Virus record (IMG/VR): IMGVR_UViG_3300034073_005389
Span: 124,001 to 188,000 of that record
Strand: one strand, 5' to 3'
Length of the DNA stretch: 64,000 nucleotides
The position numbers and the translations under genes were made by a program. This document shows positions 8,500-44,196 of this stretch, one piece after another (position 1 is the first letter of the stretch; each line of letters opens with the position of its first letter). The notes under the pieces are model-generated. The model was not told the DNA's origin. It did no database searches and was given only the letters and a program-made list of their open reading frames with translations.

Positions 8500-8543
8500 A
8501 AATTTTTCCTTATAAAAATCTAAATATAATATCAGATTATTAA

Positions 8544-11500: not shown

Positions 11501-12269
11501 TAGATGCTGATAAAACTATTCTTAAATTTTTTTTTAAGTCTGTGCTTGCTTTAGGATAAATTTTTTCCCATAAATTTAAAGCAGATAATCTAGAACTAAA
11601 AAGTTGTTGTATCCAATCAGTTAAGCCAGCAGTTTTATAAAATTGTCCATGTTTTTGTATTTTATATTTGGTGTTACTGGTAACATTACCAAGATCTCTT
11701 TGTATGTTTTCTTTTAAATCTTTTAATTTTTTTCTTTCATCTTCAGAAAGATATTCTTCACCTTTAGCTTTAGCTAAATAATTTTTGATTCTCTCTTTCT
11801 GTTCATCGGTCAAATTCTCTGCTAAAGATTTAAAATATTCTTGATTTAAACTAATTGTTAATGAGTCTAAACTTTTTAATAATTGTGCACAGTATAATAC
11901 TTTTTGGTAAAATTGATCTAAATAAGAAATTGCTAACAAATACTCTTTGTTATTATAATTTTGTTGAGCTAAATCTAATACTTTTTTAATAGGTAAATCT
12001 CCAGCATATGGTGCTTGATCGCCCATTTTCTTTCCTAATAAAGTAGCTCTAATTCCGTTATCTACAGAACGCAAATTATTCATTATTAATTGAAATAAAT
12101 CGCTTTTTTTCTCTACTCTAGCTCCACCAAAATTAGCCCACTCTTTAAATGATTCGGTCCATCCCCAATCTTGAGCCAACTTGTTAAATTTATTTTGATT
12201 AGAAAATTGATATTTTTTTTGCATTTTGTCGTTTCCAAATAAAACTCTACTAAATACTGTTTTAACCAT
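8544..12269 (-). CDS. array paralogue 2 (1241 aa), putative internal head/ejection protein
   Basis: Same conserved termini; Ala/Gln/Pro linker; KOW/SH3-like segments; alternative start at 12224 (MQKKY). Confidence 0.85.
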   Translation of the reverse strand: MVKTVFSRVLFGNDKMQKKYQFSNQNKFNKLAQDWGWTESFKEWANFGGARVEKKSDLFQLIMNNLRSVDNGIRATLLGKKMGDQAPYAGDLPIKKVLDLAQQNYNNKEYLLAISYLDQFYQKVLYCAQLLKSLDSLTISLNQEYFKSLAENLTDEQKERIKNYLAKAKGEEYLSEDERKKLKDLKENIQRDLGNVTSNTKYKIQKHGQFYKTAGLTDWIQQLFSSRLSALNLWEKIYPKASTDLKKNLRIVLSASNRLLNVLQTNLNKMSQARIDRQVADYVKTSKNIVDQVNQYSSSIDRVNFSQYADQLQNILNNVVPPEQQKEVGNTTSAPSSQLSAQVKNNSNTSAPAPSPAQVAAAPATPAATVAVVQAVVAAQPQIQAAQQQLAAANPATPEIKEAAQQAAASLSNLQQSIEQVRQVGQAEANIPSIEIDLNDLNLSIKPEVKANLENLDRKTPEQLQAVLPDLQRVEEQLNQEQDQPKAREAAGFFNRLIKSIKNMGKAKVEQVQAAAASLINAAQDAQQKLDNIEELSKQQAGELSPVTVEVVAEASKALQDAVPPIPNKSWFARAVISLRDFIGIPANTGAKATIDGKEQEVKIQGIDRESNQISVITPDGKQLSLPPENIEIDEARIRFGKLANLAGITPDVSGVADLDQYIKDKNNFILNNLNKYDDIENPNLAIPIAELLAAIDRVKDIIAKDPEQSKKYSLQEYEKLYDKFFDKFIRNKFNKFKTPVPSQEPSDIPGAEGLESKFKVGDILSISVAELFDFNTKEGFSAINNYVLQLYLEKKGYKKVTEDDLSTEKLSHFTLSDKNIVTIKIESIDEQNKKAFVIINDLKSVLGPKFDSPKIEISFNKLNQFATLSSGEVGVSIPDESSGVPSVVQQSPAQKLYNIIKEKLKTNKINVKIPTEYFFENLTTGMSPSLQNILELKDVKDVKNIKEQVKREVKENIVNNPDYLQAELYSLSSSNDKYDFIIFYQDKTYGPLYGLFENFTERAFPNVIRSMMPEIYQEFESSQGGSESIPDGSQSVQSTIAVAPSVEPEEDLTPLQKAYKFFNLEPTAHLWEIQTIVKELMMRSNNKDYQQKIIDNYRVIADSISSEIKFSVNDKISISKNIFINNLKPQHKSLPEILNNINDPITVTIKEKQNIDNIVYYLVEADIADPTSDTPTTLTALIPEQDLKNAKKASFVYILEKLSYESPIIVASFIRKYANLINKKNKKISYKLKKIASMMV

Positions 12270-15300: not shown

Positions 15301-16902
15301 AACAGTCTTTGTCTCTGGCTCTAGTTCCGCAGGTGCTGCTGCCGCTGCCGGTTCTGCTGCCGCTGGTGCTGCCGCTGCTCCTGCTGCTGCTTCCGGTTCT
15401 GCTGCTTCCAGTGGAGGTGAGGGCTTCGCAGCCGCCGCAGCTTGATTATTTGTATTTTTAACTTGAGTAATTGCATCATCACTTGCCGGAGCAACAACAT
15501 TTTTATTTGTATTTTGACTAGCTAATTTATTTGTAAAAAATGTTTTTAATTCTGCTAAACTTGTACTATATATTGGTCTGTTTGTATCAGATTCTGGCAA
15601 ATTACTAATTTTACTTGCTAAAGAATCTAATAAAGAAATAATGTTAGTAACTTCTTCTTGAGTATAATTACCTTCTTTATTAATTAAATCTTTAGCTTCA
15701 TTTAAACTCTGTTGAATATCAGTAATATTTTGTGGAGTAACAGGTGCTTGACTTAATTGCTGCCGGACTACAGTAGCACGAGCCAACTCACTATCACTAG
15801 CACGAGCTTGAGTTACTGGGACAGTTACATTTTTACCCTCTACCTCTACTACTACCTCACCAACATTTGGTCCAGGAGCAACCACCATTCCAGTAGCAGC
15901 TTGACCATTTACAGGTAAAACAACTGTATTCCCAGGACTAACGTCAACAGGCAATTGACTTTGTAAAGCTGTTGCAGTAGCAGAGTTAGTATTTACTTTA
16001 GGAGCAGCTGGTCTAGATGCATCATCTGCATTTTCAACCGCAGCACCTAAAGAAGCAGCACTAGGAGCCGTAGCTTGCTCTTTAGCTTCTTGCATTACCG
16101 TTTCAGGAATTTTAGTTCCTAGTACTTCTAAGATCTGACTCTTATATGTATTTAAATTTAAACTATTTAGTTTACCACTGTAAACTTGAATTGCATTTAC
16201 CGTGGCATCAGCAAGTAATACATAATTAGTTATGTGCCTTTCTGAACGATATCTAGACATCCTTACTAAATTATTTTTAATAGTATTTAAAATATTATTG
16301 GTAATAGAATATGCTTGTGTTAATACTGCGCGTAACTCTTTGGCAGCAGCTGGATTAATACTAGACCATAACTCTAACGCCGATTTGCGATCATTAAAAA
16401 ATCCACTATTGAAAATATGTGAAATAAAATCAAAAAATGCCGCAGTCTTTACAAAATTATGATCACTAGCTGTAGCTTTCTTGCTATTTAAATAATTACT
16501 AACTTGCTCCGCTTGCTCTGGTGTAATGTTTCCAGCCAAAAATTGTAAATATGCCTTGTTTAAAACAGTTAAATCTTGTTCAATTTTTTTAAATGTTTGA
16601 CATGTATATGCAATCTTAGAATATAATTGATCTAAATCTGATATTACTTGCAAATATTCTAAATTGTCTAAATTCTTTTTAGCACTTCTAAGTAACTCGT
16701 CTGCTGATACGTCGCCACCAAAAGGCATCGCCACGCCAACCGTCTTGCCAAGCAAAGTTGCTCGCACCTCATTATCGTGCTCTCGCAACCTGTCCATCAT
16801 ATCCCTAAAAATATCTACTTCGTTCTCAATCTTGCGAGCCCCAAAATTAGTCCATTCACGAAATAAGTCAGATAAAGATCTTTTTTGTGCAACTTTGTAC
16901 AT
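12322..16902 (-). CDS. array paralogue 1 (about 1526 aa), putative internal head/ejection protein
   Basis: Most divergent N-terminal module; shortened C-terminal ESPIIVQSF module; acidic tail. Start moved from 16914 (TTG) to 16902 (GAGG RBS, MYKVAQ). Confidence 0.85.
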   Translation of the reverse strand: MYKVAQKRSLSDLFREWTNFGARKIENEVDIFRDMMDRLREHDNEVRATLLGKTVGVAMPFGGDVSADELLRSAKKNLDNLEYLQVISDLDQLYSKIAYTCQTFKKIEQDLTVLNKAYLQFLAGNITPEQAEQVSNYLNSKKATASDHNFVKTAAFFDFISHIFNSGFFNDRKSALELWSSINPAAAKELRAVLTQAYSITNNILNTIKNNLVRMSRYRSERHITNYVLLADATVNAIQVYSGKLNSLNLNTYKSQILEVLGTKIPETVMQEAKEQATAPSAASLGAAVENADDASRPAAPKVNTNSATATALQSQLPVDVSPGNTVVLPVNGQAATGMVVAPGPNVGEVVVEVEGKNVTVPVTQARASDSELARATVVRQQLSQAPVTPQNITDIQQSLNEAKDLINKEGNYTQEEVTNIISLLDSLASKISNLPESDTNRPIYSTSLAELKTFFTNKLASQNTNKNVVAPASDDAITQVKNTNNQAAAAAKPSPPLEAAEPEAAAGAAAAPAAAEPAAAAAPAELEPETKTVVKGGRITAELRKTFKKEDVVEITGPDNRPYRYILKKEIADKTRGDWEALLLPRNTKANIFTKQIIKNITAEDEQIKAQKKIDEITSALSNNVMYGYSAKAVGRGVKSILKGLKPGPIAIVFDRNNNRYIATQERSTPPVLISKDKLKDLIDAIEYKQSVTDLNINLEHVINPLALRTIGPMFGIDTSKININKTVKFSEDKNNNNNVFLHYKNADGYDEVSPESASKDNLIQQNLFSTNTPAAPAGAGASGAGASGAGAGAGAGAGAGAGAPGGTTENKIEKRLKNASIEYIEEPDWGNGTLVKVDTAQEGDTISNRYYFNFENHPSGPGYEVVIYENDLTSKIRATPKTATPPQKQPAPSAASTKKDISSFMPDTIVQGKVAGISQDFLNFIRQQDFDDNVIASQLIGKVTNIISAVEVQVDFPFLRYVCNVSDSALENKHKYLIGRRNFSIFIQHLELLDQKTALPKYIYTKDYNVGDRITFDNTSGVIKTATAYMELYRLVSLAQAQNNNNNILTGTVTNVNRAEYNNPGSIEVRFDNIDPIFTINPKQYYLVKVIEPAAKPPVAGGEQPPLAGESPAEVGGQSPAKAVKNLDRFAIFFDSSKFTLTKYSNLNEIKNDDAIKYTPVENDEYFGFILNTTLIENENEQFARVSFTDGNRTHTITVNANDLENNKIQKVIFTSSPPTLTERDEEAPLSPEEDSPPAEQKVPPAVESVQGVTNQSQLKEILKNIKAGDTFSFEDAPIETKKINIPKLKILGTMQTQPKKIKILTFNKDKNSLNFELSLEETAKYKEKGEDEVIKSRLVTKQISGNLTTLENYLSNKDYRYEPAVSIKPSPIVETRTPAKKMTIDEKLNLLNMLIPNKFEKIQTDIENKSESEKAEYLDNILKNIVEENKKNIRKQVSEEEVEKEEVAGEEREEDQGEGEGEGPDEDLEREFLQELGLGEEEEEFEEEDEDELDYKKAFNQIKNKESPIIVQSFLRRLRLLNK
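14489..14566. repeat. coding tandem repeat (GCACCA)x8 plus two GAAGCACCAGCACCA units, encoding a Gly-Ala linker
   Basis: Read directly from the sequence; the 8 perfect copies span 14489-14536. Confidence 0.9.
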
Positions 16903-16962
16903 TTTTAACCTCAAAAATATAAACTATTTATATGTTAAACTAATAGTATCTTTTTTATTTTT

Positions 16963-19900
16963 TTATGGAGGAGGTGGCGCTTCTCCAGGTGGTGCCCCTA
17001 AATCTGGCGGAGGTCCTCCAGGTGGCGCCTCTCCAGGTAATGGTGCCCCTCCACCTGCACCCTCTTCCACCGGCTCTGGAATCTCGTCTTCCTCATCCAA
17101 TGCACGCAATGTATTCAAATCCAATGCCGCCAATGCCGTCTTTTCTTTCTTGGAAATCTCTGATTGAATTGCTTCCTTGCGCATCTTGCGTACCTCATCG
17201 TCAAACTCTAATCCCAAAGAATGATACAATGTATGCAATGATGCCCGCTTCTGATCTCCCTCGCCCTGTGTCAAAGTACTTAATATGTTAATATAATCCC
17301 CTGTGTCAAACAAAGACATGTGATTCCATGTTATCTCAGGTACTATTAACTGCTTCTCTCCACCCGAATAATCATAAAAACCCTGAATCTTAGATATAGG
17401 TGCAAAAATCTTTCTCTTCAACCAACTAGATAACATGTTCCTAAATTGCATGTACCTTTGACGTAATACATCCAATGCCACACCACCGTTGGCATATGTA
17501 GTGTCAGCTCCACCATCCATTATCACAGATGGTGCCTGTAACCCCGTATAAATCTCTTTGATCAATTGTGTTATGTCCCCAGAAATATCATAAATTCCTG
17601 CCCCATAACCCACTCTCTCTACCGTCACTCCCTCGTGCGTAAATACTTTAAAGTCCTTGTCGTATTGCGCTTCTTCAAAAATATTGCGCCACGCTTCTAA
17701 ATCAGCAAAAGTAGGCTTGAACTCCGCTGAACCTATCTTGACTAGGGTCAATGGATTTATCATATTGTCCGCTTGAGCGTATTTAGAATTGCCTTGAATC
17801 GTAATTTTCCCATTGCGTCGGGTCACAAACAATCCAGTTGGTACCTCAAAACACCAAACTACACCATTATAGTCTTTTTCTATAATTCTGGCCCCGCCAC
17901 CATTGTTATTTTTCTTTGGTAAAGAACTAACGTTTGGCTCAACTCCATAATTTGTATCTGACCACATAACAATATATTCTGTGACAATTCTTTTATCAGA
18001 TTTTGCAGCCGTACTAACACAAATATTTGGCACATAACCTAACTTATAAACAAGCTCATATACATCGTCAGCTAATTGCTTAGAAACAGTAGAGTATCTA
18101 TAATTTTTAGATCCAGTACCGTATTTACTAAATCCTTCAGTACCATCACCTTTTACTAATGCTTCTAATAAAATAGACATTAATTCTGGTTTTAGTTCAA
18201 GTGTCCATCTAGGTAATTTTTTAAAGTGAGAAGATACTTGGTTATTTGTCCCTAACTCATTTGAAAAATGAGCAACAATATCTTTTCCATGAATTGATAC
18301 GCTCCAAATTTCTTTAGGAGTCAAAGCAGAGTATCCTGTTCCTGCGGTTTTAATAAAATGATTTGCTTTTTTACCCATAAAAGTTGCAAATTTAGAAAAT
18401 GCATCTTTCATATCTTGATAACAATCGCTAGAAGTTAATTGATTAACAGAAATAATTGCATCATATCTTCCGTTTTCAAAATTAGAATAAATACATCCTT
18501 CAGATGCCAAATAACCTAATACTTTTAAATATAAGTCTGTAGGAATATTATGCCCACAAACATTAATTGATTCAGGATCATTAGTTAAATTAAAATTAGC
18601 TTTAGAGCTTAATTTGTAACCCTTCTTTTTACTTAAAAGAGAGGATGCTGTTCTTTTCTGAAAATTACCCCATTTTCCATTAGTGCTTTCTTTTACCCAC
18701 ATCTTGTGGTTAGGTGTAACTAAACAGTCTACTTTTTTACCAGTAAAATGAAGCATCTTGCCTTCGTAATGCGACATGTGCATCTCAATTGGCGCGTGAT
18801 ACTCTACCTGATTGTTTTGCGGATTCACACATGCCACTTTGAACCCCTCTTTCATTGACAGTATTTTAATACTGTCTGGGCTCAAGTTTTTACTGTCTTG
18901 GTTCATATTTTTACTGTCTAGGTTCAATAAAACGCCATTAACAAAATTTGAATTAACGTTAATATCTGAGGTAAAATGCAGTAAATCAGTGATTTTCTTG
19001 AATCCTTTGTCGGTTAGAACCTCTGTGTCTTCATCGTAACACTCCCTTAATTTATCAAATAACATAAGCTGCCTGAACACACACACAGGCAGACCGGTTC
19101 CTCTAATTTCGTATGGGCTAATTTTTCTGGCCAAGTGGGAGATATTATAATTTTCCAGCGGGATATTATCTCCACGTTTCACGGAGTCGATGATATGTTG
19201 ATTTAGTTGTTTTTTCTGTTCGATATCGGCGGGTTTATTGGAGAAGATAATTTTCTTTAAATTTTCATCAGGGCGGAGCATGATGAGGGGTTCATCAGCG
19301 ATGACGGTGCGTTTGACGACCATGTAGTCTGGGTTTTGGATTAGTAATCGATCCCATTTACCTTTAGTTTCATTTAATTCTGCGTAGATGAAGGATTCAC
19401 CTAGTAGCCAATATTCTTGGGCTATTTGAACGCAGATATTCATTAGATTAAGTTCTTCGATCATATCGTTGAAGAACTTTTCAATTTCTTTGTTAGGGCA
19501 TTTGATGTTCATTTTGCTGATGGGGTAAGTACTATGTAGATTGATAGCATTATGAACAAAAGGATTTAAAGCATAAAAGCTTCTGCACCAAGCATTAATA
19601 GTGGCACGGTCTCTTGGAAGATTAAGATTGCTATTAAGCCATAGAGGAGAATAGACTTCAGGAGTTTGTTTAACAGAGTCTCCATTACCTCCACGGAAGC
19701 CTCCACCTGTACCAACGACTTGACCTACTTTTTTAAAACCGATAGAAGAGACTACGTTTGAATTTTGGGTAGGAGTATAATTTTTAGATGGGGTAGCGGA
19801 TCCATCACGAAAGAATCCTTGTTCTACTTCATTGGCGAGATTATCTCTTCTAGATTGAGAGACACTTTGAGCCATGAGGGCACTGACTTGAGGGACTTGA

Positions 19901-19971
19901 GATTTATTTTGTAGATATTGTTCAGAATTTGATGGACCTGTCCAAATCTTACCATTTTTTGAAATTGACAT
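16963..19971 (-). CDS. portal protein containing an intein (1002-aa precursor, about 584 aa spliced)
   Basis: Next to terminase; NPFVHNAINLHSTYP and YEIRGTGLP segments, GGVALDVL, and an acidic/Pro-rich tail fit a portal; interrupted by a clear intein. Confidence 0.75.
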   Translation of the reverse strand: MSISKNGKIWTGPSNSEQYLQNKSQVPQVSALMAQSVSQSRRDNLANEVEQGFFRDGSATPSKNYTPTQNSNVVSSIGFKKVGQVVGTGGGFRGGNGDSVKQTPEVYSPLWLNSNLNLPRDRATINAWCRSFYALNPFVHNAINLHSTYPISKMNIKCPNKEIEKFFNDMIEELNLMNICVQIAQEYWLLGESFIYAELNETKGKWDRLLIQNPDYMVVKRTVIADEPLIMLRPDENLKKIIFSNKPADIEQKKQLNQHIIDSVKRGDNIPLENYNISHLARKISPYEIRGTGLPVCVFRQLMLFDKLRECYDEDTEVLTDKGFKKITDLLHFTSDINVNSNFVNGVLLNLDSKNMNQDSKNLSPDSIKILSMKEGFKVACVNPQNNQVEYHAPIEMHMSHYEGKMLHFTGKKVDCLVTPNHKMWVKESTNGKWGNFQKRTASSLLSKKKGYKLSSKANFNLTNDPESINVCGHNIPTDLYLKVLGYLASEGCIYSNFENGRYDAIISVNQLTSSDCYQDMKDAFSKFATFMGKKANHFIKTAGTGYSALTPKEIWSVSIHGKDIVAHFSNELGTNNQVSSHFKKLPRWTLELKPELMSILLEALVKGDGTEGFSKYGTGSKNYRYSTVSKQLADDVYELVYKLGYVPNICVSTAAKSDKRIVTEYIVMWSDTNYGVEPNVSSLPKKNNNGGGARIIEKDYNGVVWCFEVPTGLFVTRRNGKITIQGNSKYAQADNMINPLTLVKIGSAEFKPTFADLEAWRNIFEEAQYDKDFKVFTHEGVTVERVGYGAGIYDISGDITQLIKEIYTGLQAPSVIMDGGADTTYANGGVALDVLRQRYMQFRNMLSSWLKRKIFAPISKIQGFYDYSGGEKQLIVPEITWNHMSLFDTGDYINILSTLTQGEGDQKRASLHTLYHSLGLEFDDEVRKMRKEAIQSEISKKEKTALAALDLNTLRALDEEDEIPEPVEEGAGGGAPLPGEAPPGGPPPDLGAPPGEAPPPP
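17788..19041 (-). mobile_element. intein with LAGLIDADG homing endonuclease (418 aa)
   Basis: Block A CYDEDTEVLTDKG, block B TPNH, endonuclease blocks VLGYLASEG and LLEALVKGDG, block F/G VWCFEVPTGLFVTRRNGKITIQGN, then Ser+1. Confidence 0.93.
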
Positions 19972-33576: not shown

Positions 33577-34272
33577 TCAGTTATTATGAATGCCATACCT
33601 CAATAATATATCTCGGATTGTATTTTTGCTACAACTAAATTTTTTAGCTAAATCCATTCTAGAATATTGACCCGTCTGATACAAATTGCAAATTTTCATT
33701 TCTTGTCGCTTAGAAAATAAATGCTGTGACTTATGATATGTTTTTCTTATTTTTATTTTATTTCTAAGCAAAATATCAGAAATAGTGGTTTTAGCGCAAT
33801 TATATTGTTTAGCCAACCAATAAGCCGATTTGTTTTCTACACTATACAATCTACATATTTCTTTTTCAATAGCTTCACTAAATTTTCTTCTAGATTTAGC
33901 TGAAGTATTAGATCGAGATCTTGAAATATTTATTTTCCATTGTCTGGGAAATTTTTTCCCACCATTAGTATTTCCACCATCTCCACCTTGAGTATCGTTG
34001 TATCCACGATCTGATTTATAGCTATCATAAAATTTAATATAAAATTTTTCTCCTTGAATCATTGCTTCAAATGAAGAGTATTGTTTCAATAATTCAATAT
34101 GAAAATTCTTTTCTCCATATTTCCTAATAGCTTTATGCAAGGAGCTAGAAGAATTTTTTCTTGCACTAAGACAATGCTGATACAATCTAGCAGATAAAGA
34201 TCTTTGAGTGTATCCAATATATATTTTTTGATTAACTAAATTAGTAATTTTATATATTTGATAGTAAGTCAT
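33577..34272 (-). CDS. GIY-YIG homing endonuclease with NUMOD/HTH tail
   Basis: YQIYKITNLVNQKIYIGYT, RLYQH, E-x-x-x-I, GYN...GG; two C-terminal HTH repeats. Confidence 0.88.
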   Translation of the reverse strand: MTYYQIYKITNLVNQKIYIGYTQRSLSARLYQHCLSARKNSSSSLHKAIRKYGEKNFHIELLKQYSSFEAMIQGEKFYIKFYDSYKSDRGYNDTQGGDGGNTNGGKKFPRQWKINISRSRSNTSAKSRRKFSEAIEKEICRLYSVENKSAYWLAKQYNCAKTTISDILLRNKIKIRKTYHKSQHLFSKRQEMKICNLYQTGQYSRMDLAKKFSCSKNTIRDILLRYGIHNN

Positions 34273-35015
34273 ATTTGTATAGTAAAAGATAAAGAATCAT
34301 AACTATTTTGAGATAGATACTCATCTATATCTTTATATGGCAGTGGCAAATAAAAATTAGTAATATTAGCTAATCCTTTATATTTTTCAGTTATTTTTTT
34401 ACGACCTTTTTCTCCTGCCTCATCATTATCTAACAAAAGACAAATATTATTGGTGTATCTTGTAAGTAAAGACAGTTGAGTGGCTGACATATCTGCTCCT
34501 CCCAAAGACACAATATTTTTAAAATTGTTTTGAGAAGCCTTGATAGTATCAAATTGACCTTCTACTACAAAGGCGCAGCCTTTTTCTAATATTTCTTTTT
34601 TGTTTTCATACAAACCAAACAAATGTTTGCTTTTAGCAAAGTTCGTATTTTTATACTTTGAAACTTTGCGTTGATGATCTGGTAGTAAAGATCTGCCTAC
34701 TAAAGCAATTACGTTACCATATACATCTTTGTATGGCATTACTAAAGGATGATCTTCAAAAAAAGAAAATAAAATCTTTCTAGGAAATAAAGAATCTTCA
34801 ATATCTCTAGAATAAAGAAGCGAATGTTGAGATAAAACTTCTTCTCCTACAATAGAAGTTAATGCTTGGATATTTTCTAAATTAGGAAAATATCCAAACT
34901 GGAATAATTTTTGCCCAGATTCATCTAATCTATTATTGATGTAATCTTTGCAATCTTGAGCTTGGCTATAGTTATTTAGCAAATAATGACAAGCATCTAC
35001 GATTTTTTGTAGCAT
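34269..35015 (-). CDS. dnaG: DNA primase DnaG catalytic core (TOPRIM), lacking the zinc-binding domain
   Basis: FQFGYFP, VIALVGRSL, KYKNT, FVVEGQFDTI, LLLDNDEAG, KDIDEYL; starts at the catalytic N-terminal subdomain. Confidence 0.88.
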   Translation of the reverse strand: MLQKIVDACHYLLNNYSQAQDCKDYINNRLDESGQKLFQFGYFPNLENIQALTSIVGEEVLSQHSLLYSRDIEDSLFPRKILFSFFEDHPLVMPYKDVYGNVIALVGRSLLPDHQRKVSKYKNTNFAKSKHLFGLYENKKEILEKGCAFVVEGQFDTIKASQNNFKNIVSLGGADMSATQLSLLTRYTNNICLLLDNDEAGEKGRKKITEKYKGLANITNFYLPLPYKDIDEYLSQNSYDSLSFTIQI

Positions 35016-35016
35016 A

Positions 35017-35352
35017 TTAAATATCTTGCGGTTTTTTTAATTGTTCTAATAGCATGATTTTAAAGGGCTGACTAAGATGCGAATGCAATGCTTTACATTT
35101 AGGGCAAATTACTTCTTTATTTTGAATTTGGGGACGCTCTTCTATATTACAATTTTTGCATTTAACTGCAAAAGAAATTGTTTTTTTAGGTCGATATTGC
35201 TTAAATTGTTTCATTTGCATTTTAATAAAATGCGTAATATTGTTTAATTCTCTCTCACATTTAGAGCAATATACTTTATCTGTAGCTGGATCTAAGTATG
35301 GTTCCATTAAGTCTCCACAACCACGATTTGAGCAAACTATAGAAAATGGCAT
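35017..35352 (-). CDS. small zinc-ribbon protein
   Basis: Four Cys pairs (CSNRGC, CSKC, CKNC, CPKC). Confidence 0.75.
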   Translation of the reverse strand: MPFSIVCSNRGCGDLMEPYLDPATDKVYCSKCERELNNITHFIKMQMKQFKQYRPKKTISFAVKCKNCNIEERPQIQNKEVICPKCKALHSHLSQPFKIMLLEQLKKPQDI

Positions 35353-36284
35353 TAAGCGTCCTTATTTTGTAATAAATTAATGATTTGATCTGTATTTTGT
35401 GGATATTCCACTTCTAGATAAACTTTTTGATTACCTTTTTTATTTACTCCTAGATTAGGAATTATTACTACGTCTTTGTTTTTAGACAAGGGCTTAATAT
35501 TAATTTCTTTCTCATCTAACACTGTAGGAACTACTTTTGCACAGCCTTGCAATGCCTCCAATAAAGAAATTTTAAGATAAGAAATTACATCTGATCCTTC
35601 TAAAGACAAATTAGTATTATTTTCCACATGAATATACAGATGTACGTCACTAGACTGATCTAGTCCCATAAACTGACCGACATAGTTTCCCATACCAGCT
35701 AGTCTAAGAATATTGCCATCAGACACCCCTCCAGGAACAGAGACATGAATATTACACTCAGAATCTAAAGAACCTTCTCCTTTACAAGGAGAACATTTTT
35801 CTGTTTTAGTCTTACCCATGCATTTGTCGCATGTTTGCACAAAAATCATCTGACCACGAGAAACAGTAATTTGCCCTCTTCCTTTACATTTGTCGCAGCC
35901 ATTGTTTAATTTAATGAGACCATCTCCGTCACAAGAATTGCATTTTGTTTTTCTAGAATAAGAAATATTCTTTTTTGTCCCTAATACTGATTCTTGGAAA
36001 GAAATAGTAGTTTGAATAGAGATATGCTGAGGGACAGCTTTTACTCTACCACCAAATGGATTAAATCCTGAAAACCCAGAAAATAAAGAATCAGGTTCTG
36101 GTTCATCGCCTTCTTTGATTCTAGTGTAAGCTTCATTTATTTTTTTAAATTTAGCATCAGCATCTGGCTCTTTATTTACATCTGGATGATATTTCCTAGT
36201 TAGCTCTTTATATTTCTTTTTTACTTCTTCTTCTGTTGCCTGATTTGATAAGCCAAGGGTAGAATAGGCTTCTTTTAAATTCAT
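35352..36284 (-). CDS. dnaJ: DnaJ chaperone (type A)
   Basis: J domain with HPD, short G/F linker, four CxxCxGxG-type repeats, C-terminal substrate domain (GNILRLAGMG). Confidence 0.92.
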   Translation of the reverse strand: MNLKEAYSTLGLSNQATEEEVKKKYKELTRKYHPDVNKEPDADAKFKKINEAYTRIKEGDEPEPDSLFSGFSGFNPFGGRVKAVPQHISIQTTISFQESVLGTKKNISYSRKTKCNSCDGDGLIKLNNGCDKCKGRGQITVSRGQMIFVQTCDKCMGKTKTEKCSPCKGEGSLDSECNIHVSVPGGVSDGNILRLAGMGNYVGQFMGLDQSSDVHLYIHVENNTNLSLEGSDVISYLKISLLEALQGCAKVVPTVLDEKEINIKPLSKNKDVVIIPNLGVNKKGNQKVYLEVEYPQNTDQIINLLQNKDA

Positions 36285-36829
36285 TTTTTCTTACCTTTAA
36301 TCTTTTTAGTTAACAATAATGAATAATATAAAGCAACAGCTATGCTGTCAGCCATATCATAATTTTCTACTTTAATACAACCTTTTTTGTTGATCTGATA
36401 TGGAAATGTAATTTGTAAATGTTTGGCGACAAGATCTGGAATATCTTCTTTTTTTGGTAAGGTTTTTTCTAATTTTATTCCATGACGGATAGTCATGACA
36501 TTAAAATAATTTGGTTCTTTCTTTAAGAAATCATACGCCAATAAACCAATCATTCTATTAAAAGAAGTTAGTGTAATAATAGTCTTAGCGGTAGAAGCTC
36601 CAGACATAAATTGAATAATATCTTCTATTACAATATGATCTGGAGATACTGATTCTATTATTTTCTTAATCTTGTCTCTAGTATCAGCTAATCTTGCAAC
36701 TATGCTTTCTTTTTTTATAGGCTTAATGTAATTACAAGATACAAATTTAATGTTATTAGAATCATCAATTTCTAATACGCAATATCCAATTGTTGTTGAT
36801 GAGCAATCAATTCCCAGTATTTTAGTCAT
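36281..36829 (-). CDS. ruvC: RuvC-like Holliday junction resolvase
   Basis: KILGIDCSSTTIGY, IVIED, DMADSIAVA. Confidence 0.82.
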   Translation of the reverse strand: MTKILGIDCSSTTIGYCVLEIDDSNNIKFVSCNYIKPIKKESIVARLADTRDKIKKIIESVSPDHIVIEDIIQFMSGASTAKTIITLTSFNRMIGLLAYDFLKKEPNYFNVMTIRHGIKLEKTLPKKEDIPDLVAKHLQITFPYQINKKGCIKVENYDMADSIAVALYYSLLLTKKIKGKKK

Positions 36830-37987: not shown

Positions 37988-38335
37988 TCATTTCACTAAT
38001 GTTTGCATTTTATTTGCGTTGAAAACTAAACTTCTGATGCTGTGTACCCTGTGCCAGGGGAACCACATGTCTAGTATAAGTTCCTTAGGAGTCTGTGTCA
38101 ACAGGTCGTTAAATGTTTTAATTATCTCTTCGTCTGATAATTCTGAAAAGAATCCTTTTGCTAAAATAAAACCATTCTGTGAGTCTGGCTTATCTATAGA
38201 AATAAATTTTTGATATGTAGTGCCTGATTTCCCACCGCTAGAATGAGATAGCGATACTAAATAAATAGGTTTTTTATTAATAGCCCCAACTGTAGGAATG
38301 GTAGCTACGCCAATTGAAAAATCTTTATCCATCAC
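37988..38335 (-). CDS. hypothetical protein
   Basis: 115 aa, overlaps the recA stop. Confidence 0.75.
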   Translation of the reverse strand: MMDKDFSIGVATIPTVGAINKKPIYLVSLSHSSGGKSGTTYQKFISIDKPDSQNGFILAKGFFSELSDEEIIKTFNDLLTQTPKELILDMWFPWHRVHSIRSLVFNANKMQTLVK

Positions 38336-39492
38336 TTTACCTTTCTTTTCTTTTTGCTATCTTCGTCTTCTTCTGATTTATTTTTTAATGCTTCTTGTTC
38401 TTGTCGTTTTGTTTCCCATTTCACATCACGAGCTTCTGAAATTTTTTGAACTAACTCTTCTGCTAAGGCAGGATCCTCTTTAATAGCTTCACAGAACTTT
38501 CCAAATCCAACCCATTTCTTATCACCATATTCATGTGTAACAGATGTTGGCTTGCTAACCACATTATAATCTAATGCTAGTTGTGCAATCTCTTCATGAC
38601 GATCAATTACTCCAATTCCAAAGTCTACTTTAAATTCACATTTTTTTGGCCAAGCACAAAATTTTGATTTTTCTGTAGTTGCTCTTATGGTATGACCAAT
38701 CTTATTATCTTTTTCATCTAAAATCATTGCATCTTTTCTCATCACCGCTTCAAAATATAAATTGGCTGAAAGAAAGTGAGCATATGTATTTCCGCCAGAG
38801 AAAGTATGATCAGAGCCATAAGGATCCATATTGTCTCTTTTATGATTGATAACTAAAAATGGAACATTAGCTTTATTTACTTCTAAAGCAAGCTTCTTAA
38901 ATGTTGTAGTTAAGAATCTTGCCATTAGTGCCATGTTAGCTTTTCCAACAGCAGCTACATCCTCTCCTGGAGGAATTACGGCACCTAATGAATCTAGAAT
39001 AATAAGATTTACATCTATTTCTTTAGAAACAATCTTATCTAAGAGACCCTCTTTCTTTTTACCAACTAAAGCATGGGTTCTAGCATCTTCTTTGGGCTCT
39101 CCTAATAACATCTCGAAGCAACGACGACCGTTAACTGCTAAATCGCCATCAACGATAATAACTCTAGAAGTATCCAATCCTAGTTGCTCTGCCCACTCAA
39201 CGTTAAATGTATTTTCTGCATCAATAAATACTTGTTGAGACTCAGAGTTGAGTTGTTGCGCCTCTTTCATTGCCAACATAGCTAATAAGCTTTTGCCAGA
39301 TCCAGGAGGTCCATATAATTGGATAATCCTGCCTAAAGGATATCCGCCACAACCTAGAATTTCATCCAATAATAGTGATCCGGTAGGGACTGATTTTAAT
39401 TTGACATTTAACCTATCTTTTGCGACTTGATAATTTAATTGCTCATCTGAGTTTGCATAACTTTTAAAAAATGCATCTAGTTTACTTGACAT
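38332..39492 (-). CDS. recA: RecA/UvsX recombinase
   Basis: PTGSLLLDEILG.GGYP.GRI.QLYGPPGSGKS, VFIDAE, IILDSLGA, INH.R, GG loop. Confidence 0.93.
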   Translation of the reverse strand: MSSKLDAFFKSYANSDEQLNYQVAKDRLNVKLKSVPTGSLLLDEILGCGGYPLGRIIQLYGPPGSGKSLLAMLAMKEAQQLNSESQQVFIDAENTFNVEWAEQLGLDTSRVIIVDGDLAVNGRRCFEMLLGEPKEDARTHALVGKKKEGLLDKIVSKEIDVNLIILDSLGAVIPPGEDVAAVGKANMALMARFLTTTFKKLALEVNKANVPFLVINHKRDNMDPYGSDHTFSGGNTYAHFLSANLYFEAVMRKDAMILDEKDNKIGHTIRATTEKSKFCAWPKKCEFKVDFGIGVIDRHEEIAQLALDYNVVSKPTSVTHEYGDKKWVGFGKFCEAIKEDPALAEELVQKISEARDVKWETKRQEQEALKNKSEEDEDSKKKRKVK

Positions 39493-39564: not shown

Positions 39565-42500
39565 TTACTCAACAACACTTGCCCAAGAATCTATTCTTGT
39601 TACTTGTCTTGGTGCTGGTATCGCCCTAGTAACAGTATTGGTTTTTGAATTATCAACGTTCTGACCAGTACTCACTGTTTGAAAACTTAACTGAAAAGAT
39701 GTACTGCTAGCATTAGATACAGCAATCTTACTACCTAAATACGGATCATTAAATACTTGAGTCTCTATACAAGTAGGAATTTGATTTAAAGATATTCCAA
39801 ATATTAATGTCCCGTCTGGCTGCTTTACATTAGTTACATATCCTTGTGATAAATCATTAGGATCTACTGCGTACCTAGCTACTGGACCTCCATTGCTAGA
39901 AGCTAAGTAATCTACTCCCCAAATAGAACCATAACCAATAGAACAAGCATTGCTATTATTTACTAAAGGAGAATAAGTAGAAAAATATACAATCCCATTA
40001 AATAAAACTAAATTTCCAGTTACTCTAGATCCATTATTTAATGGCTGTACCCAATTTTCAGAAACTTTAACAGTTGAATTAACTATAGATTCTTTTAATG
40101 ACCATACTCGATTTACAGCCTGATCTCCATTGCTTAATTGTAATTGCTCTCCTGTAGTAAATAAAATTATATTATTTCCAAAAGAATCTACACTAACAAT
40201 AGGCGCAGTATGAATCGCTTCCCCAGATAAATAATTATCTGTAGGTAAAGAGTAAGCATCCCAAATTAAATCTGCGCTCCATAATTGAGGATCTGAGCTA
40301 GAAACATCTATTCTCCACAGAGATCCATCTGCATCTCCTACATAAATTTTAGAAGCTACTTGCCCTGTTTGAGATGGATATGCTACTGGAATTCCTGTAA
40401 TAGGAGAATCAAATGGCACTACTTTCGACTTACCCGCAGCAACTAAACCTGGAGGTCCTTCTGCATCAGAGCCTCTAAAGTTCATTAATACTTCTCCAGT
40501 ATCTAGTCTAACAATAGTCAATGATCTGCCAGGACCTTCTTGACCATTGTTTTGCCAACACTTGACAGACCCCCGCACTCCATAAGATTCTTTAGGATTA
40601 AAGATAGTATAAGGCTTTGGCTGGCGATTGCAAGCCCCTGCTGCTAGGGGCGACTCTCCGCCTGATAAAATACCTACAGCTATTTCTTTAATTTGACCAC
40701 TGCTGTCTTTAATAGATAAATTAGCAATTGTAGGAGTAGGGGATGTTCTTCCAAATAATTTATTTCCATTTACATCAGTAGATAATTGCCACAAAAATTT
40801 AGGATTAACTGGATCTGTTACATCTAAGGCATAATAAAATCCACCGGCAGGACCACCACCTGCTAACAATATGCTATTCCAAACTGACCCATTATTTGAT
40901 GCCTCAATAACATTTTTCTCATACACTACATCTTTTACAATTGGCGAGCCATCTAATAATATAGATTGCTGATTAAAAGAGCCTAATAAACGAGGTAATA
41001 CAATTGGAGGAATAAAGCTCCATAATTCATTATTTTTTAATAAATCTACTTTTAATAAGTCATTGTTATCATTTGCTGAAACTTTAAAAGCATGTAGTTG
41101 ACCATCTGTAGTTGCCGTGTATAACATTAATGGTCTTTTGCTTTGAGTAACTGCAAAATTTGCGTATGACTCGTCTCTTAAATATTCTTTAGGAGTTCCA
41201 GTTACAAAAGGAGTAGAATGATAAATAGATCCTAATTCGCTACAAGTAGAATTAGCTGGGCAAAAAGCGGGTTCTCTAGTCAAAAAAAAACCTGGTGTAG
41301 TTTCTCCTACATTCCAACGAATTAATCGTAAAGCACATTCTGTAGCACTATCAGTTAAAAACTGATCGCACAAATTAGGTACATTCAACGGATCAATATT
41401 TAATGCTTTTAAATTATTTAAATTAGATAATTGTGTGGAGAAGCTTTGACCATTTAATGGACCAATAATATTTCCAAAAGTAATACCTAAACCATCATTA
41501 CTTAATAAATTTGGTCTAGCACTTCTATCTGAAAAAATATTAACACCCGTATTATTAATATAAGTAATAAATTTTCTTGGATTAGCTATGTCATTAGAAT
41601 TAATATTCGAAGCAAAATCATCTCCCTTTAATGGATCTACAGGGTTAATAACTGTTTGTAATACTCCATTTTGAGAAGAACAAGTATACCTTTTTCTATC
41701 TAAATTGCCCTGCCATAATCCAGTGCCTCCAGGAATAGAGAATGAGGACCCAAATTGATAACCAATAGCTGGTGCATTAGATAAGGAATTAGATGTAACT
41801 GTAGCAGAAGAAAAAACTGGCAATGTTCTACTAGTAGAAGTATTAGTGATATTGGATAATACAGAAGATAAAACAGATTTTAATGAACCAAGATTATCTG
41901 CAAAATATGCTTTTTCTGTGCCGCCATTATAAGCAATTCTATGTAAATTACAACAAGCTTTTAATGTGCCAGATGCAGTAGTACAAATCCCATTAGCAGA
42001 AAAAGCAGTTACAGGATCTACCTGGCTACAATCAAAACCTGCCCCTGATGCTAAACCAAATCCTACTGCAAAAGTTTTAACTTGCTGGTTAATATTCAAA
42101 TCTTTAGCTAATTCATATGCAATTTGTTCTGGCAATGAATAAGGGCATTTGCCTCCAGGAGCAGCGCATTCAGGTCGTAAATCTAAATTAGGCTCTCCAT
42201 CAGAAAGTACGATAATGTAATTTTTTCTACATCCACCTAAAACATATGGATCAAAAGATGGACTAATTGGTTTATTATCAAGATCTTTAGAAAGATCTAA
42301 TTTAAAATATCCTTGAGCGTCTGACAACATACCAGCTAAAGGCGTAGCTCCATAAGGTCTCATGGCGAGCAATGCAGTTTGAATGAACTCTGTTCTAGCT
42401 TTAGAATTAGTTGGAGATTCATCAAATGGTCCAAATGGTACAAATCTACCTTCCCATGGAGGAGCTGCCTGATTACGGGCGCCTACTTCTAATTTTTTAG

Positions 42501-43185
42501 GAGAACATCCTGCTGGATTACCGCTAGCAAACACTCCTCCATTACCCCAATTAGCGTAATAACTCCACAATCCATTCATACCAGAACTAATAGAATAATC
42601 AGGTCCATTAGATCCTGTAGATGAGTCTGGAGAAGTATCAAATGTCATTAGTCCAAATCTAGCTCTATCTCCAAATACGTCTAAAATTCCATCATAAGAT
42701 GGTTTGAAAGCGCCAGGCGAACATAATTTGTTTAAATCATTATATGGATGAATTCTAAAAGCATTGCTTGGAACTGGCCAAGTTAGCCAAGAAAAGGGCA
42801 AAATACCAGGACCTAGAGCACAAATGTTGCCTGCACTATCTTTGGACAAAGGTCGATGATAAGATAAACTATATGGCTCATCGTAAGGCTCTACACTATT
42901 AATAGAATATTCTGCCTTAAAAGAAGATGTTGTTCTTTTTAGTTCTTGGCATGAATAATTATCAAGAGTTCCGTTCAAGACTGTAAGTAAGGTTGCCCAA
43001 CGATTTAATGGAGTAGTAACTCCAGGATTGCATTTAGGCAAAGAATTATCAATCATTCTTTCCATGGACCCAGAACTATCTACTAGCAATAGTACATTAG
43101 GCATGGGAGGATTAATATCTGATTGAGCGAAAGCATTAGAAGAATAACAGATAATAAATAAAATTAGTAATAAATACTTTTTCAT
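39565..43185 (-). CDS. pilY1: secreted PilY1/PilC-type type IV pilus tip adhesin (signal peptide + vWA + beta-propeller)
   Basis: Sec signal MKKYLLLILF...SNAFA, MIDAS DSSGSM, LGSIYHSTP, DGQLHAF, ELWSFIP, LDGSP.V.DV, YYALDVTDP..PKFLWQ, YVGD..GSLWR.D, GIVYFSTY. Confidence 0.85.
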   Translation of the reverse strand: MKKYLLLILFIICYSSNAFAQSDINPPMPNVLLLVDSSGSMERMIDNSLPKCNPGVTTPLNRWATLLTVLNGTLDNYSCQELKRTTSSFKAEYSINSVEPYDEPYSLSYHRPLSKDSAGNICALGPGILPFSWLTWPVPSNAFRIHPYNDLNKLCSPGAFKPSYDGILDVFGDRARFGLMTFDTSPDSSTGSNGPDYSISSGMNGLWSYYANWGNGGVFASGNPAGCSPKKLEVGARNQAAPPWEGRFVPFGPFDESPTNSKARTEFIQTALLAMRPYGATPLAGMLSDAQGYFKLDLSKDLDNKPISPSFDPYVLGGCRKNYIIVLSDGEPNLDLRPECAAPGGKCPYSLPEQIAYELAKDLNINQQVKTFAVGFGLASGAGFDCSQVDPVTAFSANGICTTASGTLKACCNLHRIAYNGGTEKAYFADNLGSLKSVLSSVLSNITNTSTSRTLPVFSSATVTSNSLSNAPAIGYQFGSSFSIPGGTGLWQGNLDRKRYTCSSQNGVLQTVINPVDPLKGDDFASNINSNDIANPRKFITYINNTGVNIFSDRSARPNLLSNDGLGITFGNIIGPLNGQSFSTQLSNLNNLKALNIDPLNVPNLCDQFLTDSATECALRLIRWNVGETTPGFFLTREPAFCPANSTCSELGSIYHSTPFVTGTPKEYLRDESYANFAVTQSKRPLMLYTATTDGQLHAFKVSANDNNDLLKVDLLKNNELWSFIPPIVLPRLLGSFNQQSILLDGSPIVKDVVYEKNVIEASNNGSVWNSILLAGGGPAGGFYYALDVTDPVNPKFLWQLSTDVNGNKLFGRTSPTPTIANLSIKDSSGQIKEIAVGILSGGESPLAAGACNRQPKPYTIFNPKESYGVRGSVKCWQNNGQEGPGRSLTIVRLDTGEVLMNFRGSDAEGPPGLVAAGKSKVVPFDSPITGIPVAYPSQTGQVASKIYVGDADGSLWRIDVSSSDPQLWSADLIWDAYSLPTDNYLSGEAIHTAPIVSVDSFGNNIILFTTGEQLQLSNGDQAVNRVWSLKESIVNSTVKVSENWVQPLNNGSRVTGNLVLFNGIVYFSTYSPLVNNSNACSIGYGSIWGVDYLASSNGGPVARYAVDPNDLSQGYVTNVKQPDGTLIFGISLNQIPTCIETQVFNDPYLGSKIAVSNASSTSFQLSFQTVSTGQNVDNSKTNTVTRAIPAPRQVTRIDSWASVVE

Positions 43186-43191
43186 AAATCC

Positions 43192-44196
43192 TCACTTATC
43201 GGCATAAGAGAATACTTTGTCTAATGACATTCCTTTGGTTTCTTCTACTAATTGTAGATTTTTCAGAATATTCATTCTTACTTCTTCATCTGGTGGACCT
43301 ACTTCTTTCACAAATCTAAATCTAGAGGGTCGGCTTTTGATAGAATCATCTATTTTAGTAATATCATTAGCTGTCATAATAAACATAACTTGTTTATAAT
43401 CATTATGAACGCCATCTAATGCATTAATAAAAGAATCAAAAGTAAATTTAACTTGATCATTTTTCATAGCACATTCTCTACCATGAAAATAATTATCAAA
43501 GTCCTCCATTAAAACAATACATCTTTGAGGAATAGTAGAGAACATTAAAGAAATATCTAAGTTATTGTATTCAGGATTTAAATACACTATGTATATGGGC
43601 AAGCAGTATTTTTTGCTTAAATACTTAACAAACTGTGATTTACCATTACCTGGAGGACCGTATAACAAACATCCTGTTTTTCTTTTTTTACCAGACAAAA
43701 CTAATTTTAAATCTTCTTCAATGTCTTGATAAATTGATTTAGACAAATAAATATTAGGATTAGATTCGCAAATCAGCTGCCCTAATCTATCAGATCCTCT
43801 TGGCACTAAAGCCATGATAGAAATAGTACTATCATCTTGATCTGAGCCATCTAACATATTATCAATTTTGCTTCTTTGCCATCTTGGAAAAATAATATAA
43901 GAAACACTTTCTTTACTTTCCCAACCAGTAGTTAGCAATCTTTCATTTTTACCAAAATAAAAAAAACAGCCATTTAAAAAAACTAAAGCTTCATATATTT
44001 CTGGATATTTAGGATCTTTTACTTTATCCTTAGATAAGACCCAAGCTTTAGAATTATTTTTTTTAATTTTATTAATTAATTTTTTACTTATTTCATTATC
44101 TAGTCTATAATTATTTAAAATTAGATACTTAAATACAGCCCAGCTAGAAACAAGAATTGTGCTAACAATACCAATAATAGTTAAAAAACTATTCAT
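43192..44196 (-). CDS. membrane-anchored AAA+ ATPase (BCS1-like)
   Basis: N-terminal hydrophobic helix; GCLLYGPPGNGKS, VLMEDFD, FINALDG, MTAN, RPSRF. Confidence 0.85.
   Translation of the reverse strand: MNSFLTIIGIVSTILVSSWAVFKYLILNNYRLDNEISKKLINKIKKNNSKAWVLSKDKVKDPKYPEIYEALVFLNGCFFYFGKNERLLTTGWESKESVSYIIFPRWQRSKIDNMLDGSDQDDSTISIMALVPRGSDRLGQLICESNPNIYLSKSIYQDIEEDLKLVLSGKKRKTGCLLYGPPGNGKSQFVKYLSKKYCLPIYIVYLNPEYNNLDISLMFSTIPQRCIVLMEDFDNYFHGRECAMKNDQVKFTFDSFINALDGVHNDYKQVMFIMTANDITKIDDSIKSRPSRFRFVKEVGPPDEEVRMNILKNLQLVEETKGMSLDKVFSYADK

Follow-up and report, generated by a model that had tools for sequence, protein, structure and literature searches.

The pilY1 gene and its surroundings

The window analysed here is a 64,000-nucleotide stretch (positions 124,001 to 188,000) of IMG/VR virus record IMGVR_UViG_3300034073_005389, a 361-kb, 33%-GC genome of an uncultured jumbo phage that is estimated to be 97% complete. 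An open reading frame beginning with ATG occupies exactly window positions 39565-43185 on the minus strand, some 160 kb inside the record, and encodes a 1206-aa, full-length ortholog of PilY1, the tip and priming protein of type IVa pili. TerL, a portal-like protein, UvsX, an SSB-like protein and Pol III alpha are encoded in the same record. A sequence-only reading had described this protein as a PilY1 with a signal peptide, a MIDAS-bearing vWA domain, many cysteines and the PilY1 propeller motifs, AT-rich like its neighbours and with no other pil genes in the window; that description is confirmed.

The first 20 residues (43126-43185, minus strand) form a predicted Sec (type I) signal peptide, MKKYLLLILFIICYSSNAFA followed by QSD, with a KK n-region, a hydrophobic core and an AxA cleavage site (AFA before Q). 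It was identified by inspection of the sequence, and equivalent peptides are found in all seven phage copies and in the cellular ones; there is no prepilin motif. The protein has 22 cysteines, of which 21 lie in the mature part, the same count as in cellular relatives. Residues 21 to about 450 (41836-43125, minus strand) are predicted to form a vWA domain with a large insertion. Its MIDAS residues, D36-x-S38-x-S40 (nucleotides 43066-43080), T281 and D329, are invariant across 54 homologs, and an AF2 model of the N-terminal 440 residues (pLDDT 88.8) matches only vWA domains in the PDB by Foldseek, namely those of PitA, factor B, SpaC and Streptococcus sanguinis PilB (best E 1.4e-4, probability about 1). 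The evidence here is at the level of fold rather than of family, since Pfam finds no family in these 440 residues even at E 10, and NCBIfam gives only a 28-residue, sub-threshold hit of the MIDAS stretch to CglB.

A middle beta/helical region (about residues 451-650; 41236-41835, minus strand) links the vWA domain to the propeller and is the least conserved part in phage and cellular copies alike. The C-terminal PilY1 beta-propeller (about residues 651-1190; 39616-41235, minus strand) includes the YVGDADGSLWRID motif. Pfam PF05567 scores 33.3 bits against a cut-off of 28.1, though only over profile positions 19-195 of 411; a profile search hits 3HX6, the C-terminal domain structure of Pseudomonas aeruginosa PilY1, at E 4.6e-16, and for the model of the full protein (pLDDT 83.8, pTM 0.83) 3HX6 is also the best PDB match, at E 1.6e-14 and ahead of generic propellers. 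The extreme C-terminal strand (39568-39618, minus strand), ending TRIDSWASVVE, is conserved in phage and Polyangiaceae copies and is the predicted docking strand for the minor pilin PilX.

Directly upstream lies an AAA+ ATPase gene (43192-44196, minus strand; Pfam AAA, phrog_7485), whose stop codon falls in the pilY1 Shine-Dalgarno region (GATAAGTGAGGATTT-ATG). No terminator-like site lies between the two genes, which appear to be operonic, and the ATPase gene is adjacent to or near pilY1 in most related phages (contigs L014, L015, L008-L011 and L100-L102). Directly downstream is a UvsX/RecA-like recombinase gene (38332-39492, minus strand; PF00154, phrog_97), which places pilY1 inside the replication/recombination module. 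No further pil genes were found in the window or anywhere in the 361-kb record: there is no N_methyl prepilin signal and no homolog of the Polyangium minor pilins, and the one weak T2SSE hit, at record positions 194970-195116, was considered as a PilB/PilT candidate and rejected, as it is an FtsK/SpoIIIE-family ATPase. Such linkage is the usual context of pilY1 but does not define it, since unlinked pilY1 genes exist in Myxococcota.

Phage residence, origin and selection

The gene belongs to the phage. Both of its junctions recur in two independent assemblies, L014 (97% aa identity) and L015 (78%), and three separate sequencing runs hold 100% of the sampled 31-mers across both junctions. The gene has a GC content of 0.352 and a GC3 of 0.168, against 0.205 +/- 0.06 for the ORFs of the genome, whereas the nearest cellular copy has a GC3 of 0.96. 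The record is labelled "provirus", and its last 13.5 kb has a foreign composition of about 50-60% GC, but that end is 180 kb away from pilY1. The label was considered as a sign of lysogeny and set aside, since no tyrosine or serine recombinase was found and the phage appears virulent.

Among 185,579 species genomes, the 80 best hits are all Polyangia; identity to Polyangia PilY1 over the full length is 42-58%, and all of the close cellular homologs are Polyangiaceae PilY1 genes in minor-pilin operons. Full-length identity to the copies in such operons in Polyangium aurulentum (L013) and at loci L096 and L097 is 48-58%. In trees built on an FFT-NS-2 alignment, the seven phage copies form one clade (support 100), nested in Polyangiaceae and sister (support 100) to P0008, a copy in a 72%-GC contig with the order MaoC, DUF6599, four minor pilins, PilY1, as in P. 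aurulentum. Rows L025, L033, L038 and L074 were left out of the trees because the longest-ORF rule had picked a wrong or over-long frame and given an artefactual long branch, as were L052 (wrong ORF) and L067, L077, L086 and L088 (partial). A tblastn search of 50,697 deposited phage genomes found nothing, nor did a scan of IMG/VR with the single protein; a profile scan, however, detected a second PilY1 type, 29-30% identical to the first, in four related phage contigs (L100-L103). This second type is sister to a different Polyangiaceae copy, L093, and the AU test rejects a single phage clade (p 4e-8), so that there were at least two captures. In all, the gene is present in at least 11 phage contigs.

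The phage copies are under strong purifying selection, with dN/dS of 0.06-0.15, like UvsX and the AAA ATPase. Of 144 sites that are at least 95% conserved in 86 cellular copies, 139 are kept in all seven phage copies, in both domains, and no phage-specific change was found at an otherwise invariant site. GC3 moved from about 0.96 to 0.17 while function-critical residues stayed in place.

The sequence-only reading had suggested a myxobacterial or deltaproteobacterial style for the protein, and the myxobacterial guess was right. The gene's phylogeny points to Polyangiaceae as the host, but the host is inferred from this alone, and a 33%-GC phage in a roughly 70%-GC host is a very large gap. Searches with the phage PrkA and with MYG1, the one Pfam-recognisable gene in the GC-rich end of the record, returned no named close cellular relatives and so gave no host name.

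A possible role at the host pilus tip

Since the phage has no pilins or pilus motor genes, its PilY1 must rely on host parts. When residues 650-1206 were modelled with the PilX and PilV of L096, the complex scored an ipSAE of 0.67 in all three runs, against 0.00 for the best of three controls; that mark was reached by 51 of 78 solved complexes and by 2 of 108 mismatched pairs. Run-to-run contact agreement was at least 82% and partner pLDDT at least 75 (76 in each run). The predicted interface includes the C-terminal strand, residues 1190-1204 of which contact PilX 127-151 and 182-196, matching the published model of PilX-PilY1 strand addition (PMC11046646, PMC13190605). The minor pilins used come from the nearest cellular relative rather than from the true host, and such a score shows likeness to a family with a known mode of binding, not that this copy binds.

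The best explanation is that a lineage of uncultured jumbo phages captured a working pilY1 from Polyangiaceae (Myxococcota) and that its product replaces the host tip protein. In this view, the gene would be transcribed with those of the replication module, which implies early or middle expression; the Sec system would export the protein to the periplasm of the infected cell, where its 21 cysteines can form disulfides; and its C-terminal strand would add onto the beta-sheet of host PilX, placing the propeller on top of the host FimU-PilV-PilW-PilX priming complex. Newly primed type IVa pili would then carry the phage-encoded vWA/MIDAS adhesin at their tip. The most likely benefit is receptor masking, with pili still working but phages that recognise the host tip, including siblings, no longer adsorbing, as with prophage-encoded FimU in Pseudomonas. 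The identity of the gene, its residence in the phage, its Polyangiaceae origin, the two captures, the selection upon it and the in-silico docking on PilX rest on the analyses above, while export, incorporation into the tip, the timing of expression and any benefit to the phage are inferences. Identity and origin are put at about 0.95, but the whole chain, including the benefit, only at about 0.45. Within a type the phage PilY1 evolves slowly (65-79% identity, slower than several other shared phage proteins), which differs from the highly diverse phage FimU alleles expected under a phage-versus-phage arms race; also, in a virulent phage, any exclusion would act only during infection.

The sequence-only reading had proposed that the phage swaps or poisons the host pilus tip for superinfection exclusion or altered adhesion, and this interpretation is supported only in part: a full-length PilY1 does lie in a real phage genome, but the purpose remains a hypothesis. 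That reading had named chimeric junctions, a non-PilY1 fold and a virion role as grounds for rejection; the junctions proved reproducible, the predicted fold is that of PilY1, and the Sec signal peptide and 21 conserved cysteines argue against a cytoplasmically assembled virion part. Of its two options, "swaps" fits better than "poisons".

A less likely alternative is that the phage simply maintains or boosts host piliation. During a long jumbo-phage infection, host gene expression would fall and PilY1 would be lost with sheared pili, and the phage would resupply this limiting priming factor so that the infected cell keeps adhering, moving or feeding, without any role in excluding other phages. 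The retained sites in both domains, the low dN/dS and the ordinary or slow rate of evolution for this phage group all fit this, as do the essential roles of PilY1 and the minor pilins in priming in Myxococcus xanthus and the presence in the phage group of other host-physiology genes (PrkA, SpoVR, DnaJ-like). On the other hand, only PilY1 is supplied and not the four equally essential minor pilins, the phage copy is only 58% identical to the nearest cellular copy and is hence not a simple spare part, and two separate captures of different types suggest that the identity of the tip matters.

It is unlikely that the protein is a dominant-negative poison which binds PilX or the machine but cannot prime, or which plugs the secretin, so that the infected cell loses its pili, blocking superinfection and stopping progeny from adsorbing to doomed cells. 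The docking strand is conserved and docks in silico, and phages do disable type IV pili by other means, such as Aqs1; however, a plug needs only the docking part, and yet the MIDAS residues, all 21 cysteines and the 139 conserved sites across both domains are kept in every phage copy.

A more speculative and improbable possibility, though one of much interest if true, is that the phage does more than mask a receptor and re-programmes what the infected myxobacterium sticks to. Its own adhesin at the pilus tip could tether infected cells to uninfected kin or to particular surfaces in a swarm, raising transmission; this would be a virus-specified adhesion phenotype, and the repeated capture of different PilY1 types would then reflect matching to each host's tip complex. 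A hijack of signalling is also improbable. In P. aeruginosa, PilY1 acts as a surface sensor and, with the minor pilins, modulates FimS-AlgR and c-di-GMP, so that overproduction might shift second-messenger or two-component signalling to a state favouring the phage, but no such pathway is known in Polyangiaceae, no direct evidence for it emerged here, and nothing in the sequence distinguishes it from the structural role.

A tail-fiber-like adhesin of the virion is very unlikely. The protein is a large predicted beta-propeller adhesin, and in relatives L008-L011 its gene lies a few genes from large ORFs with faint fiber-like domain hits; but the signal peptide and conserved cysteines of all copies fit periplasmic folding, the gene here sits in the replication module and not the structural one, it has no PHROG hit, BFVD holds no similar viral protein beyond generic propellers, and it is orthologous along its whole length to operon-encoded cellular PilY1. 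Misassembled or contaminating host DNA is refuted by the phage-like composition, the recurring junctions and the number of phage contigs with the gene.

Comparison with known systems

Phage-encoded copies of pilus parts have only recently been shown to act in anti-phage defence, and so far only small pilins, FimU and PilA, have been involved; the present case extends the idea, as a hypothesis, to the large non-pilin tip adhesin and priming factor. It shows the gene as a long-kept trait, acquired at least twice, in a widespread group of uncultured freshwater and subsurface jumbo phages, and gives a concrete host hypothesis for that group. No phages are known to have been described for Polyangiaceae, although the family matters for natural products. 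A phage PilY1 that can be swapped into a host would be a natural tool for studying what the pilus tip recognises.

The closest cellular proteins are the Polyangiales PilY1s ("clade 1.4a" of Mahanta et al. 2026, PMC13190605), such as the P. aurulentum and Sorangium copies. They share with the phage protein a length of about 1200 aa, the shortest PilY1 class, the 21 cysteines, the signal peptide, the vWA/MIDAS domain, the propeller and the C-terminal DSWAxVxE strand, with 42-58% identity from the first mature residue to the last; the phage gene differs in lying in a 33%-GC genome without minor-pilin genes and in its GC3 of 0.17 instead of 0.95-0.96. P. aeruginosa PilY1 and M. xanthus PilY1.3 have the same order of signal peptide, vWA domain and propeller, but identity to 3HX6 in the structural alignment is only 16%. 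The YVGDADGSLWR motif flanking the calcium site was seen aligned, while the stretch aligned to the residues just before the YAGD motif of 3HX6 reads TGQVAS in the phage, so that the calcium binding which controls extension and retraction in P. aeruginosa is not established for this protein.

The closest phage system is the prophage-encoded FimU of Pseudomonas F10-like phages (Sztanko et al., Cell Rep 2026, PMC12952977), likewise a phage-encoded copy of a structural part of the pilus tip complex that has to work with host parts. P-FimU is built into the pilus, leaves its function intact and blocks tip-binding phages; that study found only FimU and PilA homologs in phages. P-FimU is, however, a small minor pilin of temperate phages, whereas the protein here is a 1206-aa non-pilin tip adhesin, with a role so far inferred, in an apparently virulent jumbo phage of what would be a different phylum's host, and within a type its alleles are not highly diverse. 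Phage inhibitors of type IV pili such as Aqs1 of DMS3 are also directed at the host pilus, but these are small cytoplasmic inhibitors of the assembly motor and not homologs of pilus parts.

Architecture and genomic context of the phage pilY1 gene

The ORF at window positions 39565-43185 (minus strand) encodes a protein of 1206 aa. It begins with a canonical Sec signal peptide, MKKYLLLILFIICYSSNAFA|QSD, as read by inspection of the sequence, and a complete MIDAS motif follows 15 residues after the predicted cleavage site (D36-x-S38-x-S40, with T281 and D329); these residues are invariant in an alignment of 54 homologues. Pfam recognizes only the start of the PilY1 propeller, at 33.3 bits against a cut-off of 28.1, but a profile of the family hits the one solved PilY1 domain, 3HX6, at E 4.6e-16, and an AlphaFold model of the mature protein (pLDDT 83.8, pTM 0.83) has 3HX6 as its best PDB match at E 1.6e-14, ahead of all generic propellers. 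A separate model of the N-terminal 440 residues (pLDDT 88.8) matches only vWA domains, including the pilus-tip adhesins PitA and SpaC and the S. sanguinis vWA pilin PilB, though the Pfam VWA models do not reach this region. The MIDAS stretch (residues 28-55, window 43021-43104, minus strand) also gives a weak, sub-threshold NCBIfam hit of 18.6 bits to CglB, the vWA adhesin of the M. xanthus gliding machinery, a similarity that is probably limited to the shared MIDAS motif. This architecture of signal peptide, vWA domain and propeller is the one described for P. aeruginosa PilY1 and M. xanthus PilY1.3. The description of the gene in the sequence-only reading, as a phage-encoded full-length PilY1, proved correct in every point that could be tested, while its interpretation is only partly supported: the gene is phage-borne and of myxobacterial style, whereas the swapping or poisoning of the host pilus tip is inferred.

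The window comprises bases 124001-188000 of a 361,490-bp IMG/VR record with 33% GC that is estimated to be 97% complete. Nearly all of the genes in the window lie on one strand, and they include those for a large terminase, a portal-like protein, UvsX, an SSB-like protein and a Pol III alpha subunit. The terminase is only about 25% identical to that of any isolated phage, and no integrase or serine recombinase is present. The 1002-aa portal-like ORF (16963-19971, minus strand) matches portal PHROGs at residues 115-304 and 740-883, with a LAGLIDADG-like domain in between (601-663) along with hits to families that often host inteins; it is probably an intein-containing portal gene. Just downstream of it, in the direction of transcription, are two very large ORFs of 1241 and 1530 aa (8544-12269 and 12322-16914, both minus strand) that have no Pfam or PHROG match at all.

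The pilY1 gene sits between uvsX and a gene for an AAA+ ATPase (43192-44196, minus strand; phrog_7485, CDC48/proteasome-ATPase-like), whose stop codon lies within the pilY1 ribosome-binding region; no terminator-like site separates these two genes. The gene has the composition of the phage, with a GC3 of 0.168 as against 0.205 +/- 0.06 for 186 long ORFs of the genome. The same gene order is kept in independent assemblies: an ENA scaffold with 97% protein identity (L014, with a 100-N gap inside the gene) shows AAA, PilY1, UvsX and the same genes downstream, and a Logan contig with 78% identity (L015) shows a 172-aa ORF, AAA, PilY1 and UvsX. Three separate sequencing runs contain all of the sampled 31-mers across both junctions; a chimeric junction is excluded by these data, which rest on assemblies and k-mers rather than on read pairs. 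Downstream of uvsX the module (33577-36829, minus strand) holds RuvC-like, DnaJ-like, DnaG/Toprim primase and GIY-YIG genes, going by the Pfam calls on the syntenic L014. The DnaJ-like protein is only 63% identical between the window and L014, although uvsX is 98% identical.

The last 13.5 kb of the record, 180 kb away from pilY1, are quite different (about 348000-361490 of the record, G000:C1; 2000-15490 of locus L003). Here the GC content jumps from about 33-40% to about 50-60%, there are few long ORFs, and there is one complete MYG1/UPF0160 gene (L003:8530-9390, minus strand) whose best named homologues, from Gammaproteobacteria, are only 45-47% identical. The original contig was 371,226 bp. 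This end probably explains why the record is labelled a provirus; it could be host flank, a chimeric end or a foreign insert.

Origin and distribution of the pilY1 genes

A search of 5.8 billion proteins gave two tiers of homologues. Seven clusters at 65-97% identity lie on phage-like contigs of up to 274 kb, while hundreds at 42-58% identity carry names that are all Polyangia: Sorangium, Polyangium, Minicystis and Polyangiaceae MAGs. A scan of one genome per species (185,579 species) returned 80 best loci, all of them Polyangia, with 55-74% GC. In Polyangium aurulentum, and in two metagenomic contigs, the homologue follows four minor-pilin genes in a conserved neighbourhood with MaoC and DUF6599; these cellular copies are therefore true pilus-tip genes. 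In trees under LG+G4 (93 usable rows) and under the site-heterogeneous PMSF model (41 rows), the seven phage copies are one clade (SH-aLRT 100), their sister (100) is P0008, a cellular copy on a 72%-GC contig with that operon, and the pair is nested among the Polyangium, Sorangium and Chondromyces copies. The nearest cellular copy has a GC3 of 0.96, so that the phage copy has been completely recoded while keeping 58% identity. The family matches the Polyangiales-only 'clade 1.4a' of a recent survey, the shortest PilY1 class, with a median of 21 cysteines; the phage protein has 21 mature cysteines.

The contigs carrying the copies at 65-67% identity have 47-51% GC and share several other genes with this genome, namely those for the AAA ATPase (52% identity), a cupin (62-65%), PrkA (82%), SpoVR (55%) and a lysozyme (about 45%). 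The PrkA serine kinase is encoded here with SpoVR and a third adjacent gene outside the window (G000:C1:263164-267839, locus L098), and a search with PrkA alone finds more than 120 metagenomic clusters at 79% identity or more, on contigs of up to 371 kb. This marks a large group of uncultured jumbo phages in freshwater and subsurface samples, only part of which was seen to carry pilY1. The AAA+ ATPase and the small cupin, of the mannose-6-phosphate-isomerase type, lie next to or near pilY1 in most related contigs (L008-L011, L015 and L100-L102), though in this genome the cupin gene has moved 150 kb away (G000:C1:315671-316033, locus L099); a functional link to PilY1 is possible.

A profile scan of IMG/VR found four more contigs of this group, L100-L103, of 278, 73, 50 and 31 kb and with 45-48% GC, which share the AAA ATPase at 55%, the cupin at 58% and PrkA at 81%. 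They carry a different PilY1 of about 1,415 aa (at 8001-12134 in each locus), only 29-30% identical to that of the window, which again has a signal peptide, a MIDAS motif and a ...QSW(V/A)SVMQ end; an AAA ATPase and a cupin gene lie about 4 kb upstream. This second type is sister (100) to another Polyangiaceae copy, L093, which has 66% GC, prepilin genes upstream and 40% identity to the second type. An AU test rejects one clade for all eleven phage copies (delta lnL 398, p 4e-8), though that group was named only after the tree had been seen.

Two captures from the same bacterial family are the best evidence that Polyangiaceae are the hosts and that carrying a PilY1 pays off for these phages. 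The host is nonetheless inferred, and the gap between 33% and roughly 70% GC is extreme; phiKZ-like jumbo phages show gaps of about 30 points. A cluster of five tRNA genes (G000:C1:333315-343475; L002:3315-13475), all reading A/T-ending codons (Arg-TCT, Leu-TAA twice, Ile-TAT and Leu-CAA), fits a very AT-rich phage supplementing a host with different codon usage.

Conservation and proposed function

The sequence gives several indications that the gene has been kept as a working PilY1. Between the window and its 97% relative dN/dS is 0.06-0.09, and against the 78% relative it is 0.15, the same range as UvsX (0.11) and the AAA ATPase (0.08). Of 144 alignment positions that are at least 95% conserved in 86 cellular copies, 139 are unchanged in all seven phage copies; the five exceptions are single-residue differences that are not fixed across all seven. 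Conservation along the sequence follows the cellular pattern, with no domain singled out, and all phage copies keep the signal peptide, the 21 cysteines and the C-terminal ...R(I/V)(D/N)SWA(S/A)(V/I)x(E/D) strand. The genome has no prepilin-type gene, no homologue of the Polyangium minor pilins and no PilB/PilT, the one weak hit being an FtsK-family ATPase. Any function must therefore go through the pilus machine of the host.

Published models for M. xanthus place the C-terminal PilY1 domain on top of PilX, held by addition of the last eight or so residues as a strand to the PilX sheet, with the variable N-terminal domain forming the extreme tip. The phage C-terminal domain (residues 650-1206) was folded with PilX and PilV from the nearest cellular relative, L096. 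The score was 0.67 in all three runs, against 0.00 for the best of three controls; that mark of 0.67 was reached by 51 of 78 solved complexes and 2 of 108 mismatched pairs; the runs agree in at least 82% of their contacts, and partner pLDDT is at least 75 (76 in each run). The predicted interface includes PilY1 1190-1204 and PilX 127-151 and 182-196. Such a result supports binding but does not show it; a pass can also reflect family likeness. Interface residues are slightly better conserved than the rest of the domain, at 0.65 against 0.60 for P0008 and 0.73-0.75 against 0.63-0.67 among phage copies.

The proposed chain of events is early or middle transcription, Sec export, docking on host PilX, and pili tipped with the phage adhesin. 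While the identity of the gene, its residence in a phage and its Polyangiaceae origin follow directly from the sequence data, export, incorporation into the pilus, the timing of expression and the benefit to the phage are all inferred. For the benefit, receptor masking is favoured, by analogy with prophage FimU (P-FimU), which is built into the pilus, leaves motility intact and blocks phages that bind the tip. Against this reading, the phage alleles are not fast-evolving within a type, and it remains tentative. Maintenance of pilus function is the strongest of the alternatives. A dominant-negative plug is disfavoured because everything that a functional PilY1 needs is retained, and a signalling role is likewise doubtful. 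A role in the virion is unlikely given the export signals and cysteine content.

Relation to known systems

Full-text searches for PilY1 in connection with phage-encoded proteins, jumbo or huge phages and viral contigs found no report of a phage PilY1, and none is present in the deposited phage genomes searched or in BFVD. The study of P-FimU found FimU and PilA homologues in phages but no PilY1; it also noted that virulent phages encode such proteins. As a protein, the product of this gene is a member of the PilY1 family, specifically of the Polyangiales class. As a phage strategy, it is closest to P-FimU and P-PilA, from which it differs in that it is the large non-pilin tip protein, that its carrier is a jumbo and apparently virulent phage, that the host lineage (here inferred) is different, and that it was captured twice.
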